This document shows positions 23,311 to 47,227 of a stretch of 64,000 bases of DNA, piece after piece; position 1 is the stretch's first letter; the number at the start of each line of letters is the position of its first letter. The position numbers and the translations under genes were made by a program. The notes under the pieces were generated by a model. The model was not told the DNA's origin. It ran no database searches and worked only from the letters and a program-made list of their open reading frames with translations. Location of the stretch: the IMG/VR virus record IMGVR_UViG_3300036766_002289, positions 1 through 64,000 of that record, one strand, 5' to 3'.

Positions 23311-23403
23311 TGGCTGCTAGCTTAACGGTATGAAGCGCTTGTGAATTCGGGCTTTAAATCCTGATGAAACTTGAGAAGTAGGGTTCAACTCCTTACGTGG
23401 CCA
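23311..23403 (+). ncRNA. tRNA-like RNA with expanded anticodon arm
   Basis: TGGCTGC/GTGGCCA, GCTT/AAGC D arm, TTCAACT T loop; about 38-nt anticodon region with internal TCGGG/CCTGA hairpin. Confidence 0.6.
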
Positions 23404-23404
23404 C

Positions 23405-23481
23405 TTTCTGTCCCCCAAAGGTAAAGCTTACAAACATTACCCAAATTCAGTGTTAAACAGCTTTATAAACTTGGACAGAAA
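23405..23481 (+). ncRNA. stand-alone Y-RNA-like RNA
   Basis: TTTCTGTCC-CCCAA...CTTGGACAGAAA; TAAAGCT/AGCTTTA; CTTACAAAC; T-run. Confidence 0.75.
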
Positions 23482-23778
23482 TTTTTTTACTTCAAGATAT
23501 AAGGACAGCGCGGTAAGAAGACAGGTGATTGTGGTCTTCCTTCTGACTAGCGGGAAAAAGCGCATTTACCGAGCAAAAGTTCTCTTTCATCGGAATGACT
23601 CGGCATTAGCCAACTTTATGATAGGGCAAGCTAGTTAATATCTTGGGGTGTAAAAATGTCTGAAGCAGAGATTTTAGTGCAAAAGATTAAAGCCGCCATA
23701 CAGGCCCATAAAGACAAAGAATCAAATAAAATCAATAATTTAGTAAAGCAAATTAATAAAGTCATCCATAAATAATGC

Positions 23779-24411
23779 ATGATTAAATTTGCAGAATTCG
23801 TAAACAGAAAGCAATTTTCTGTTACAGTTGATGAATCAAGTAGATTATTAACTAAGATTAATATCAAATCTGAAGATTATTTAAATTACTTATTTGAACA
23901 TGAAGAACTTTGGGATAAAGACCCTGTAAAGGTTCTGAATGAGATTAATCCGTTTTCAGCAGGTTGGTCTGCCTTAAAAGGGGGTTTAGGAGCTATGGGC
24001 GGCAATAGAAATGCTGCTTATTATCAAAAGCTTTTAGACCAAGCTAAAACTTTGCCACCAGAGAAATTGCAACAGGCTGGTTTAACTCCAGAAGATTTAA
24101 ATGCATTAGACCAAATGCGAGCGGATTCTGCAAAACAAGGTGCCGCTGGATTCTTTGGTGGTATGAAACAAGGTTGGGAAAACAGTCGTCAGCAGCAAGT
24201 TTTAAACAAATTAAGCCAAGCATTAGGTAAAGGTGCTTATTCTCAACAAACCCAACAACAGCAGCAACAGGGTCAAAACCAACAAAGTCAGGGTCAACAA
24301 CAGCAAAGTGGTCAGCAAATGTCACAGGTTAACCCACAGGCTTTAAGACAGGTGCAAGGACATTTACAGGCTTTGAACCAAGCTATTTCTGGAATGCTTC
24401 AAGGTGGGTAA
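23779..24411 (+). CDS. Gln/Gly-rich hypothetical protein (MIKFAEF N-terminus)
   Basis: TAAATA 4 nt upstream; poly-Q C-terminus; terminator at 24432-24456. Confidence 0.65.
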   Translation: MIKFAEFVNRKQFSVTVDESSRLLTKINIKSEDYLNYLFEHEELWDKDPVKVLNEINPFSAGWSALKGGLGAMGGNRNAAYYQKLLDQAKTLPPEKLQQAGLTPEDLNALDQMRADSAKQGAAGFFGGMKQGWENSRQQQVLNKLSQALGKGAYSQQTQQQQQQGQNQQSQGQQQQSGQQMSQVNPQALRQVQGHLQALNQAISGMLQGG

Positions 24412-24501
24412 AATTTTCATCACAATAAATTAAATCCGTTGAAAAACGGATTTTTTCGTTTACATACTCAGAAATTGTAGTATCATACAGAAGTTCAATA
24501 A

Positions 24502-24531
24502 CTTGGACAGGCAACTGTCCCCAATAAGGAG
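24502..24531 (+). promoter_or_regulatory. Y-like hairpin abutting the Ro60 Shine-Dalgarno (putative autoregulatory operator)
   Basis: CTTGGAC-aggcaact-GTCCCCAA followed after 1 nt by AAGGAG; promoter TTTACA-N16-TATCAT at 24459-24486. Confidence 0.7.
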
Positions 24532-24540
24532 AATTTAAAA

Positions 24541-26043
24541 ATGGCTACCAATGAAACTGATACGCGGCTTGCTATCTTAAACACTCTGTTAACTACCCCA
24601 CACCGTAAGTTGGATCAAGTTTATCCAATTCACGCTGAAATGATTAAGCAAGACCCATTGTTCTATGGTCGTTTGGGTGCGTGGTATAACGACACTGGCG
24701 ATGTGCGTGACCATAAGGAAATGTTCATCATCAATATGTGCCTTTCTGATTTTGAAGGCCATAGGGATGCTGGCCTAGCCATGCTCCGTGAAATGCCTCC
24801 TTATCAGCTTGGTCGTGTCGTAGACTTTATTCACGGTCGTAAGGATACCAAGAAGTCTAAGGTTAAGAAGGGCGAGACTCCGCAAACTGTAGTCGAGAAC
24901 TATGGCTTATTTAAGAACATTCCGCGTTCCGTTAAGACGGAAGTGGTTCGTTATCTTCGTGAGCGTGAAGCGGAACCTGAATGGTTCGATTCTTGTGCAG
25001 TTACCGCTCGTAAGTATTTGAAGCGTTTATACGCTCTTATGCATATTTCCCCCAATGAGCGTGCGCAGAAGATTCTCTTTGAAGATTTGCCTCCAGAAGA
25101 TTCTAAGCTGTTCGCAGTGAAGGAACTCTTTAAGGCTAAGACGCCAGCGGAACAAGCTAAGACGATCATGGCACATAAGATTCCTTACCGTATTGCTTCT
25201 ACGGTAGTGTCTGCTATGACTCCGACTGTTCTTTTGGCACTTATTGAAGTTATGTCCGATCAGGAGTTAATCAATAACCTTGGTTCTCTCCGTAAGCGTG
25301 GTGCGTTTGAGAATAACGACCTTAAGGCTTTGATCGAAAAGAAGCTTGAAAAGGCAAAGACTGGCAAGCGAGTTTCTGCACTCAAGGCTTCTGAAGCTGT
25401 GAAGTCGGCTGGCGTCGATGAATCTACTGTCAAGGCATTGGAAGCTGTAGCTGACGCTCAGCTTAAGAAGAAGGGTCGTATTAAGCGTTCGACTGCCTTG
25501 TTGATTGACAAGAGCGGTTCCATGAACCAGGCTATTGAGTTAGGTAAGCAGATTGGCGCAACCATTTCTGCTATCATGGATGCCGATTTGTTTGTGTATG
25601 CTTTCGACACGATGGCGTATCCAATCAAGTCCCAAGGCACAGACCTGGCGTCTTGGGACAAGGCGTTAAGGGGTATTAATGCTGGTGGTGGTACCGCTTG
25701 TGGTGTTGCTCTTGAGTATATGATCCGTAATAAGCAACTTGCGGAAAATATCATCGTCATCACTGATGAAGGTGAAAATGGTACTCCAGCATTCGTGCCG
25801 ACTTTGAAGAAGTATATAGCAGAATTGAAGACTACGCCTTCTGTCTGCTTTGTTAAGACCACAGGTGCGTCTAATTTGCTTGAGACGCAAATGCAGCGTG
25901 AAGGTATGAATTGCGATGCGTGGCAGTTCAGTGGGGATTATTACAGCCTGCCTAACTTAATCCCTTACCTTTCCAAACCATCGAAGGTTGATCTTTTGAT
26001 GGAAATTATGTGTTACGAAATGCCTGTCCGCAAGACGGCATAA
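24541..26043 (+). CDS. Ro60/Rsr-like TROVE + vWA domain protein
   Basis: 500 aa; helical N-terminal region ([21 protein letters not shown]) and C-terminal vWA with MIDAS DKSGS, GGT, ITDEGEN; Y-like RNAs adjacent. Confidence 0.8.
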
Positions 26044-45734: not shown

Positions 45735-45953
45735 TTATTTTTCTGCGAATGGTGGACGGGCAGTACCAGGGAAATCTTGATTTAACGTTCCAAGTGGTTG
45801 TGGTTTCTTGATTTGATATTGGGCTGTTTGGCCCTTTTTGATAGGGATCATTAAATTAGGATTGATTGGGACTTGCATAGGATTTGGGCCGTTTGGAGTC
45901 ACCATTTGTTGTGGGCCAGGTTCTAAGCCTTCAAGCCATTGTCTGAAGTTCAT
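45735..45953 (-). CDS. small Pro/Gln-rich protein (MNFRQWLE N-terminus)
   Basis: coupled to upstream ORF; shared N-terminal motif. Confidence 0.55.
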   Translation of the reverse strand: MNFRQWLEGLEPGPQQMVTPNGPNPMQVPINPNLMIPIKKGQTAQYQIKKPQPLGTLNQDFPGTARPPFAEK

Positions 45954-46501
45954 TGAGGTAATCCTGTTCTTAACTTTTTAGCGCCTGCTGGTTTGTAAAT
46001 TCCAGTGCCAACGTATTGTGTTGTATCTGGTTGCATTGGTGGAGAGCTAAAATATTGGTTAGTATTGCCGACTGTTTGTGGTGTTAGTGTCATTGTTGGG
46101 GAATACCCTAATGACCTACCGAATTCAACTGTTTTTCTGCTAATTGGGTCTTTTTGTAATACACCCATTACGTAATTCCTGGCGAGTGTTCTTCCTGCTT
46201 GTCGTCTATCGCCTATTTTGGCTTTAGAAGCTATTTTTCGCATTGTTCCTTGAATAATTTCTTGTCTGTTAGTAGGGTTGCTTAGGTAGTCGGCGGCGTA
46301 GTGTAACCAGGAAAAAGGTGGTGGGCCTTGTTGAGAATCTGGTCCCCTTCTCATGGTTCGTGTAGGTTCGGTACTCATTTTAACGATGGCATTGTATGCA
46401 GCTTCTGCATCCTCGGCTGTTTCCGCTTTCGAGTTACCTCTTGTATAGACGCCTAAATTTATACCTTGTGCTTCACGAATTTCAATCCATTCTTTAAACA
46501 T
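45950..46501 (-). CDS. hypothetical protein (MFKEWIE N-terminus)
   Basis: TATAAATA just upstream on the minus strand. Confidence 0.6.
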   Translation of the reverse strand: MFKEWIEIREAQGINLGVYTRGNSKAETAEDAEAAYNAIVKMSTEPTRTMRRGPDSQQGPPPFSWLHYAADYLSNPTNRQEIIQGTMRKIASKAKIGDRRQAGRTLARNYVMGVLQKDPISRKTVEFGRSLGYSPTMTLTPQTVGNTNQYFSSPPMQPDTTQYVGTGIYKPAGAKKLRTGLPQ

Positions 46502-46543
46502 ATGGTATTTATATAAAATTTTTGATTTTTGTTGAATAATTTA

Positions 46544-46594
46544 GCCCTCATAGTACAATGGCAGTATAACTGAGTCCGATTCTCAGTGAGGGCT
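46544..46594 (+). ncRNA. mini-tRNA lacking the anticodon arm
   Basis: GCCCTCA/TGAGGGC acceptor, TAC-AATGGCA-GTA D arm, CTGAG-TCCGATT-CTCAG T arm, nothing between D and T arms. Confidence 0.65.
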
Positions 46595-47046
46595 TTGGAT
46601 AATGGAAGAATTATATTTCTGTATGCACTTGACGGAAAATGAGCATTACATAGCTGAATGGGATTTTCAAGAAAAATGTGAAGTATTGGGACTGACTATC
46701 GTTTATTACAGGAAGTTGAAGGAAGGTCATGTGCCGATGTATCGTGAGATTAAGGTGAAGGGTGAACGGCTCGCTATAAATCAATTTAAGAAATTCTTGA
46801 AAGAGAAATTTTATACAGAGCAAATTGAGAGAAACCCGCACAAAGTTTAGCCTTTTTTTGGAGAATAATTATGTTTACAGAGAAAGAAATCCAGACGATT
46901 AAACTTGCTTTAAAGGCATTTAAATTGCAGATGTGTTTTGATTCAAGAAGCACTACTAAGGATTTTAATCCAGTCCTTTTAGATGAGTTAACTTCTCAAA
47001 TGGAAAATTTTTATAAGACTTTATTGGGAAAAGTCGATAACCTTTT

Positions 47047-47117
47047 GCCACTATAGTATAATGGCATTACGTCTGTTTCGTAATCAGAAATTGAGGGTTC
47101 GATTCCTTCTAGTGGCT
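47047..47117 (+). tRNA. tRNA-Thr(CGT)
   Basis: loop TTCGTAA; cloverleaf. Confidence 0.85.
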
Positions 47118-47119
47118 CT

Positions 47120-47227
47120 GTGGAATTAGTGTAAATGGACAGCACGTAGGAGAAAGCAACAGTAAAGCCTTTTTAGGTGAAAATGATGCTCATCCCTGAA
47201 GTGACGGTTCGAATCCGTTATTACACC
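47120..47227 (+). ncRNA. tRNA-like RNA with greatly expanded anticodon arm
   Basis: GTGGAAT/ATTACAC, GTG/CAC D arm, GACGG-TTCGAAT-CCGTT; about 50-nt anticodon region. Confidence 0.6.

Follow-up and report, generated by a model that had tools for sequence, protein, structure and literature searches.

Three tRNA-like genes with enlarged anticodon arms in a huge phage

We analysed the IMG/VR virus record IMGVR_UViG_3300036766_002289, a huge phage, and concentrated on three tRNA-like genes in which the anticodon arm is oversized (candidates 1 to 3). The stretch studied, hereafter the window, covers the initial 64 kb of one contig of 390,039 bp (G+C 39%). ARAGORN detected 48 tRNA genes in the whole genome, 37 of them inside the window and nearly all on the plus strand. 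This set lacks tRNAs for Ser and Tyr and an uninterrupted tRNA-Gln(CUG), misses most Leu isoacceptors, and includes two Gln(UUG) genes. A first-pass annotation had described the three genes as one class, with intact acceptor, D and T arms and structured insertions in the anticodon arm. Its coordinates proved correct (Table 1), as did the intact arms, apart from one G-A mismatch in the acceptor stem of candidate 3. All three have homologues elsewhere and are thus more than chance resemblances. The grouping did not hold. By their sequences and alleles, the candidates are independent tRNA-derived genes: candidate 2 is a normal tRNA-Gln(CUG) with a strain-specific insertion, and candidates 1 and 3 have remodelled arms.

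We compared the window with several relatives. The most distant is the 595-kb uncultured phage LR756511 (locus L010), with 72% amino-acid identity over one marker protein; the 373-kb IMG/VR record G001 is 94% identical over the same protein. Further relatives are several metagenome contigs and loci, including L153, L154, L156 and L159. The comparison with sequencing runs used 5,701 bases and gave matching contigs (X2, X3 and X4) that are DNA only; no RNA run was found to contain the stretch. Public phage records held no near match to the stretch, and the short blastn matches reflected generic T-arm similarity. Pattern scans of IMG/VR for the arm of candidate 2, and for the Y-like hairpin described below, returned almost only chance matches.

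Structure and conservation of the three candidates

Table 1. Positions of the three candidates and of associated features in the window.
Feature	Position	Strand	Basis
Candidate 1, tRNA-like, extended anticodon arm, without recognisable anticodon loop or encoded CCA	23311..23403	+	ARAGORN, homologues
Candidate 1 inner hairpin, 5-bp stem (23347-51/23360-64), 8-nt loop containing UUAAA	23347..23364	+	covarying pair
Candidate 2, tRNA-Gln(CUG) gene interrupted in the anticodon, U1-A72	42397..42488	+	Rfam tRNA match and allele alignment
Candidate 2 insert, 21 bp between anticodon nucleotides 34 and 35	42430..42450	+	gap relative to X2 contig and L156
Candidate 3, tRNA-His paralogue, rod replacing anticodon stem-loop	47120..47227	+	homologues, covariance model
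Candidate 3 rod, 52 nt, irregular; helices of 4+2+4+2+4 bp	47147..47198	+	fold, compensatory changes
Ro60 (TROVE + vWA) orthologue, 500-residue ORF	24541..26043	+	fold match
Y-RNA-like hairpin array around candidate 1	21141..24546	+	covariation
Hairpin copies	21141-21198, 21389-21446, 21624-21681, 22970-23030, 23133-23212, 24489-24546	+	
HNH homing-type endonuclease gene	42682..43293	+	phrog_3106 and phrog_2255 'HNH endonuclease', E about 1e-39

Candidate 3 starts 1 nt past tRNA-Thr(CGU) (47047-47118). It keeps 6 of 7 acceptor pairs, a 4-bp D stem and a 5-bp T stem with a TTCGAAT loop, and carries about 35 nt of extra material. The rod ends in a distal hairpin (47167-47178) with a UUUU tetraloop, has conserved unpaired flanks (GUAAA / GAAAA), and is more stable than shuffled inserts (z = -2.6). 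Neither ARAGORN nor the Rfam tRNA model (E ≤ 10) reports this gene, which was detected by a simple T-arm/acceptor scan and by a covariance model. Two homologues follow the same tRNA-Thr(CGU), at L156:6546-6653 (93% identity) and L154:1513-1624 (82%). A covariance model of the three copies (R1) had tRNA-His genes as its next-best matches. In the model-fitted alignment, 95.8% of the pair cells are standard, against 33-48% with slid partners, and four pairs are compensatory (the distal hairpin contains two, the T stem and the middle helix one each); since this alignment of only three sequences was fitted to the structure, it leans towards it. Candidate 3 has T at position -1, where five of six tRNA-His genes that we checked in these phages carry G. 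G-1 is a known element of tRNA-His identity, and the T found in its place makes charging by HisRS doubtful. No single deletion yields a loop of the form U33-NNN-R37.

Candidate 1 has a 7-bp acceptor stem (23311-17 with 23397-403) including two G-U pairs, a 4-bp D stem with a GG-containing loop, and a T arm (23378-96) with a 6-bp stem and a TTCAACT loop. A typical tRNA has a 17-nt anticodon arm and a variable loop of 4-5 nt between the D and T arms. Here this interval spans about 40 nt (23338-23377), i.e. about 20-24 nt extra. ARAGORN labels the gene 'tRNA-??? (aa)' and the Rfam tRNA model does not match it at E ≤ 10. Syntenic homologues occur at L027:10410-10500 in G001 (79% identity), at L159:1958-2043 and, more diverged, in LR756511 (L010:1490-1593, minus strand). 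All 22 counted pairs are kept in three sequences, with two compensatory pairs: the acceptor pair 7-66 changes from C-G to G-C, and the second pair of the inner stem from C-G to U-A (in L159). The predicted energy of the arm is no better than that of shuffled inserts (z = -0.3), yet the inner stem covaries. Among the homologues the distal loop measures between 5 and 8 nt, and in LR756511 it reaches 15 nt, so it is not an anticodon loop. As in candidate 3, removing one segment does not restore a U33-NNN-R37 context.

Candidate 2 matches the full Rfam tRNA model (RF00005) with one insertion (43.4 bits, E = 4e-6, threshold 29). Its four stems are intact and the anticodon stem encloses a loop of 28 nt. 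The sister phage L156 encodes an uninterrupted tRNA-Gln(CUG) (L156:2542-2614) that lacks the 21 nt and differs from the body of candidate 2 by two substitutions in 71 positions (~97% identity). The homologue in LR756511 is also a normal tRNA-Gln(CUG), which the 5' half of candidate 2 matches. In the X2 contig, a relative from another sediment run, the gap corresponds exactly to the insert. The insertion point can be placed between C34 and U35 because the flanking bases leave the gap no room to slide. Deleting the insert gives the anticodon loop CUCUGAA. With the insert, the arm is predicted to fold into a 4-bp hairpin atop a 3-bp helix, with C34 paired to G36 and the anticodon buried (z = -2.0 relative to shuffled inserts). 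We found no second copy of the insert in the genome or in the fetched loci. Judged from these alleles, the insert is young and strain-specific, since the X2 relative, ~7% diverged in the flanks, does not have it. The intron mode of ARAGORN reads candidate 2 as Leu(CAG); we discarded this reading because the natural alleles without the insert give Gln(CUG).

None of the three candidates can decode as encoded, because a longer helix replaces the anticodon loop. A 7-nt loop with U33 and a purine at position 37 is absent from all three: the loop has 28 nt in candidate 2, the distal loop has 8 nt in candidate 1, and candidate 3 ends in its tetraloop. The description of the inserts as structured is borne out energetically by candidates 2 and 3; for candidate 1 the energies do not support it, and the pairing is indicated by the covarying inner stem instead.

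A Ro60 gene, its hairpin array and other features of the window

Candidate 1 ends 1.1 kb upstream, on the same strand, of an ORF that is weakly recognisable as Ro60 by sequence and clearly so by predicted structure. The sequence evidence consists of a phmmer match to the PDB entries 9l5y/9kop ('TROVE domain', E = 5.5e-5), a match to phrog_850 ('RNA-binding protein'), a profile match against PDB (E = 0.007) and a single sub-threshold vWA domain in Pfam. The AF2 model (pLDDT 81) has as its top 13 PDB fold matches only Ro60/Rsr proteins, all over the full length and with E between 4e-12 and 3e-8. These include Deinococcus Rsr, Xenopus and human Ro60, and a protein of the Thermus phage phiLo. A metagenome scan with this protein as query gave two loci, and the family counts over 2,700 metagenomic relatives. 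The distance from this gene to candidates 2 and 3 is 18-23 kb.

Candidate 1 sits between two units of an array of Y-RNA-like hairpins. The repeated element is about 58 nt long: a covarying basal stem closes an internal loop (AACUU / CCAA) and a 6-bp stem usually capped by a GNRA loop, the two strands reading AACUURGAC and GUCYCCAA, and UUACAAAC follows. In an alignment of 23 copies from four phages, pairing is seen in 90.4% of the cells, whereas shuffles give 77.4% (none of 500 reaches the observed value), and nine pairs are compensatory. A covariance model of the hairpin (R2) gives strong matches (E ≤ 3e-8) in the 390-kb genome only within the array. Weak matches occur at 23357-23439, starting inside the 3' half of candidate 1 (E = 0.04), and at 359779-359820 (E = 0.064). 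In the searched loci of relatives, the hairpin is confined to the tRNA-like array that precedes the Ro60 gene (L027:6424-10853; L159:429-2159; L002, L010 and L149, minus strand). The hairpin matches no Rfam family.

The conserved core of the hairpin, with GUCC/GGAC pairing, bulged C residues and AA/UU pairing, resembles the Ro-binding helix of Y RNAs (GGUCCGA/CUUGAC). The first strand has been given as GGUCCGA (PMC4201824). The hairpin is probably the Ro-binding Y-RNA module of this clade. One copy (24489-24546) follows a sigma-70-like promoter (24459-24486) and precedes the ribosome-binding site of the Ro60 gene, and LR756511 shows the same arrangement at L010:533-589 (minus strand). The position of this leader hairpin suggests that Ro60 may regulate its own translation.

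Several units of the array are themselves tRNA-like. Three tRNA-like genes (21124-21242, 21378-21500 and 22949-23079) hold copies of the hairpin in their D-loops, and the Rfam tRNA model scores 43 bits on 22949-23078 with a long insertion. Consensus sigma-70-like promoters (21080-21108 and 21336-21363) lie just upstream of two of them. The parallel with such D-loop inserts, drawn in the first-pass annotation, was informative, as these inserts are the hairpin linked to Ro60. Another unit, called tRNA-Leu(tag) by ARAGORN (23205-23279), has an all-A/U acceptor stem, an encoded CCA, and halves of a Y-like helix as flanks. Its anticodon varies: TAG here, CCA in G001 (28305-28378) and TGT in LR756511 (L010:1631-1705, minus strand). 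The flanks pair over 11 bp in LR756511, and the equivalent in L159 is a mini-hairpin only. This unit appears to be the tRNA module of a YrlA-like RNA, not a tRNA used for decoding. We also considered candidate 1 as the loop of a single Y-like hairpin. This was rejected: the R/Y pair and the extended complements of the Y-like units match across each payload (6 bp in L159, 11 bp in LR756511), and no such complements span candidate 1.

Other observations concern the tRNA array and the rest of the window. The tRNA-Lys(CUU) gene at 41715-41799 has an extra arm of ~12 nt in the variable region, which makes it 84-85 nt long, and the same is found in L156. Directly after it, at 41801-41872, a tRNA-His-like gene matches the Rfam model (47.5 bits) and is not called by ARAGORN. 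Two HNH endonuclease genes and a DUF559/REase-like gene lie within the array (41211-41753, 42682-43293 and 48656-49558), and whole-tRNA indels between strains surround the endonuclease genes; the X2 contig, for instance, has no tRNA-Asp (42318-42388). Outside the window, ARAGORN reports a tRNA with anticodon CUA, of the amber suppressor type (G000:C1 170512-170586), a possible sign that TAG is recoded in a part of the genome. The window also encodes a DnaJ-type chaperone and an ATP-dependent DNA ligase (1038-2078 and 53545-54651).

Proposed non-decoding mimics and the alternatives

In the reading that we tentatively favour, with a probability of roughly 45%, candidates 1 and 3 are tRNA mimics that do not decode but are maintained, acting as decoys or tethers for proteins that bind the tRNA body, with candidate 2 a young insertion allele of this kind. 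In candidates 1 and 3, the acceptor stem and the D/T elbow are kept and selection has preserved base pairing in the extra rod. By analogy with known tRNA-shaped RNAs, they probably bind proteins instead of reading codons. Both genes would be co-transcribed with the adjoining tRNAs, and their RNAs would adopt an L-shape and be trimmed by the host tRNA end-processing enzymes. The products would then be tRNA-shaped ligands, decoys or tethers, for proteins recognising the tRNA body. Likely partners would be host tRNA-targeting defence nucleases, or a phage RNA-repair and quality-control set made up of Ro60 with its Y-like RNAs and the Rnl1-like and Rnl2-like ligases. Candidate 2 would show this type of change at its youngest stage, a recent 21-bp insertion that forms a hairpin; unless some activity removes the insert, the gene would be a freshly disabled tRNA or a nascent mimic. 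Anticodon-loop insertions recur in the clade, since L156 has a further, independent case, described below. Among the options raised in the first-pass annotation, the conservation and compensatory changes of candidates 1 and 3 fit those of a scaffold or a decoy.

Known systems offer partial parallels. Small stable RNAs of phage T4, 'species 1 and 2' (rnaC, rnaD), are co-transcribed with tRNAs and have tRNA-like ends; their function is not known, and the likeness, drawn from their description, is a lead only. Phage tRNAs that counter tRNA-cleaving defences are also arrayed and have anticodon loops altered to escape host nucleases (PMC10264068, PMC11555353, PMC11464382). Those tRNAs still decode, whereas the candidates have no anticodon loop and could act only as decoys. 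YrlA-type Y RNAs, which Ro60/Rsr proteins bind, are non-coding tRNA mimics with D- and T-arm features; their genes, known from bacteria and from 22 phages, share the strand of a Ro60 gene and lie no more than 4 kb away from it (PMC4201824). Candidate 1 has tRNA-like arms and lies where a YrlA would, but candidates 2 and 3 are too far away. Furthermore, YrlA is a permuted mimic with its ends in the Ro-binding stem, at the position of the anticodon stem, and with a loop-closed 'acceptor' (PMC4201824), whereas in the candidates the acceptor ends are free, the rod is closed and a Ro-binding hairpin is lacking.

Several points weigh against our reading. We infer the expression, the end processing and any partner of these RNAs, and the decoy and tether roles are drawn by analogy with phage tRNAs that oppose defences and with YrlA mimicry. 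The hairpin model R2 finds no Ro-binding hairpin inside the candidates; it matches the flanks of candidate 1, and candidates 2 and 3 are unmatched. Each covariation count for candidates 1 and 3 comes from three sequences, and for candidate 1 the statistics are weak, since 55 of 500 shuffles reach its score. The acceptor stem of candidate 3 has a G4-A69 mismatch; the equivalent position in the L154 homologue is a U-A pair. Candidates 2 and 3 are dispensable, because both are missing in the 94%-related G001, and candidate 3 also in some X3 and X4 contigs. Indeed, the flanks of candidate 3 are joined directly, with the gene absent, in L153, in G001 and in some of these contigs. Finally, the insert of candidate 2 is found in one lineage only, and the available sequences do not support selection on it.

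Some of these points would suit a rival explanation, in which the insertions destroyed the anticodon loop and the genes are dead or dying tRNAs that persist for want of time. The insert of candidate 2 is strain-specific and the two Gln(UUG) genes could act as back-up; candidates 2 and 3 are missing in close relatives; the Rfam tRNA model does not match candidates 1 and 3; and the arm of candidate 1 does not exceed shuffled inserts in stability. However, candidates 1 and 3 retain every stem across homologues of 79-93% identity, with compensatory changes that include the extra arm, and the body of candidate 2 has the 2 differences in 71 positions noted above, versus ~81% identity to L156 over the surrounding 185-nt stretch (tRNA gene included and the 21-nt gap counted). 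The first-pass annotation had taken lack of conservation as the mark of decayed pseudogenes; on this count candidates 1 and 3 are conserved, whereas the insert of candidate 2 is not. We regard decay as an unlikely account of these genes.

A second explanation is that the candidates are intron-containing tRNA genes: a nuclease of the host or the phage would excise the hairpin and an Rnl1-type ligase of the phage would rejoin the halves, so that functional tRNAs result, which for candidate 2 would be Gln(CUG). In favour of this, the insert of candidate 2 is precise, its removal gives a perfect anticodon loop, and the genome has no other gene for Gln(CUG). Anticodon-loop repair is the role of the Rnl1 ligase of T4. 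The phage genome encodes an Rnl2-family ligase (G000:C1 195934-196458) and a ligase of the T4 Rnl1 family (307661-308263), so a cut-and-rejoin route is possible. L156 also has a 97-nt tRNA (L156:4992-5088) whose loop starts like Ile-GAU and which carries an insertion of ~24 nt in the anticodon loop, near position 37/38. Lak megaphages and a 595-kb phage have been described as carrying 'enigmatic introns' in their tRNA genes, and the Lak alleles with and without the insert were interpreted as introns (bioRxiv 10.1101/356790). These, too, are short anticodon-region inserts in oversized tRNA genes of huge phages, their excision point comes from with/without alleles, and their mechanism is not established. 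Only candidate 2 combines an oversized tRNA gene, a huge phage, and precise alleles with and without the insert, and it is the same phenomenon. It differs in that its insert lies inside the anticodon and in a single lineage, whereas the Lak inserts were reported identical across cohorts; candidates 1 and 3 differ in having remodelled arms under selection rather than simple inserts.

Archaeal and eukaryotic pre-tRNA introns are spliced by proteins, measure tens of nucleotides and extend the anticodon helix. The candidates resemble them as short anticodon-arm inserts that prolong this helix, but introns of this kind, one of the earlier proposals, find no support here. The genome lacks EndA (PF01974) and RtcB (PF01139), for which control genomes gave matches; of the enzymes suggested for a search, only the RNA ligases are present. 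Inspection of the folds by eye found no bulge-helix-bulge motif (two 3-nt bulges, 4 bp apart), and the geometry of candidate 2 is different, with its 5' junction inside the 3-bp helix and its 3' junction after a 5-nt bulge. Its insertion at 34/35 is a non-canonical position, found in one lineage whose ~7% diverged relatives lack it, and candidates 1 and 3 cannot be restored to U33-NNN-R37 by removal of a single segment. As had been noted, the inserts fall far short of a group I intron: at 21-35 nt they cannot accommodate the self-splicing core (P3-P9, about 200 nt or more), and no Rfam intron family matches. The Rfam scan of the candidates returned tRNA hits only, with no ribozyme, Y RNA or intron family. 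Nor do the inserts behave as a mobile or repeated element, each being unique in the genome and in all fetched loci. Splicing to functional tRNAs seems unlikely, though conceivable. Its bolder form, a protein-dependent tRNA splicing of huge phages that would be new to bacteria, seems improbable; here a nuclease would remove short hairpin introns at varied loop positions, even within the anticodon, the Rnl1-type ligase of the phage would rejoin the tRNA halves, and the intron-bearing tRNAs would be masked from host anticodon nucleases until maturation.

For candidate 2 only, the insertion might be a scar, or an immunity change, tied to the HNH homing endonuclease gene that lies 190 bp downstream. 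We hold this to be a slim possibility. The insertion would have arisen during repair of the cut tRNA gene, or would have been kept for destroying the target of the enzyme. The HNH gene accompanies the insertion allele: in the X2 contig it is missing or replaced (the joint runs from 42650 to 43325) and the tRNA-Gln is uninterrupted, and at the corresponding place in L156, again beside an uninterrupted tRNA-Gln, no gene has an HNH family match or a blastn match to the HNH gene. The three endonuclease-type genes scattered through the tRNA array and the whole-tRNA indels around candidate 2 would also agree with it. However, the evidence is co-occurrence across only three genomes, which makes it a lead at most, and the scenario leaves unexplained why the insert forms a helix that stacks on the anticodon stem. 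The last alternative, that the genes are ordinary class II tRNAs (Ser, Leu or Tyr) and that a long variable arm was mistaken for an insert in the anticodon arm, would suit the absence of Ser, Tyr and most Leu tRNAs from the phage set and the long variable arm that ARAGORN draws for candidate 1, but we dismiss it: candidates 2 and 3 align base for base with a class I tRNA-Gln and with tRNA-His, respectively, and ARAGORN can parse candidate 1 only with a loop of 6 nt and an 'anticodon' of two bases, a parse that the covarying inner stem contradicts.

Meaning for phage tRNA genes

Short inserts in the tRNAs of huge phages were already known, and so were tRNA-mimicking Y RNAs beside Ro60 genes. 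What is new is an unambiguous allele pair that puts an insert within the anticodon, and two conserved tRNA derivatives with a covarying rod as anticodon arm, in a phage that also has a Ro60 gene and an unusual array of Y-like hairpins. The 'enigmatic introns' of huge phages thereby gain a concrete case that can be tested: one gene and two natural alleles that differ by 21 nt. The Ro60 gene and the covarying hairpin array, in turn, suggest that the phage carries a Ro/Y-RNA system whose tRNA-like architectures are unusual.

Phage tRNA genes are now seen largely as counter-measures to bacterial defences that cut tRNAs. If candidates 1 and 3 are indeed maintained mimics, selected RNAs that are tRNA-shaped and do not decode would add a layer of decoys or tethers to the conflict between phages and these defences. 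The three candidates would also show a route by which such RNAs may originate, the insertion of a hairpin in the anticodon loop, with the event seen at three ages.

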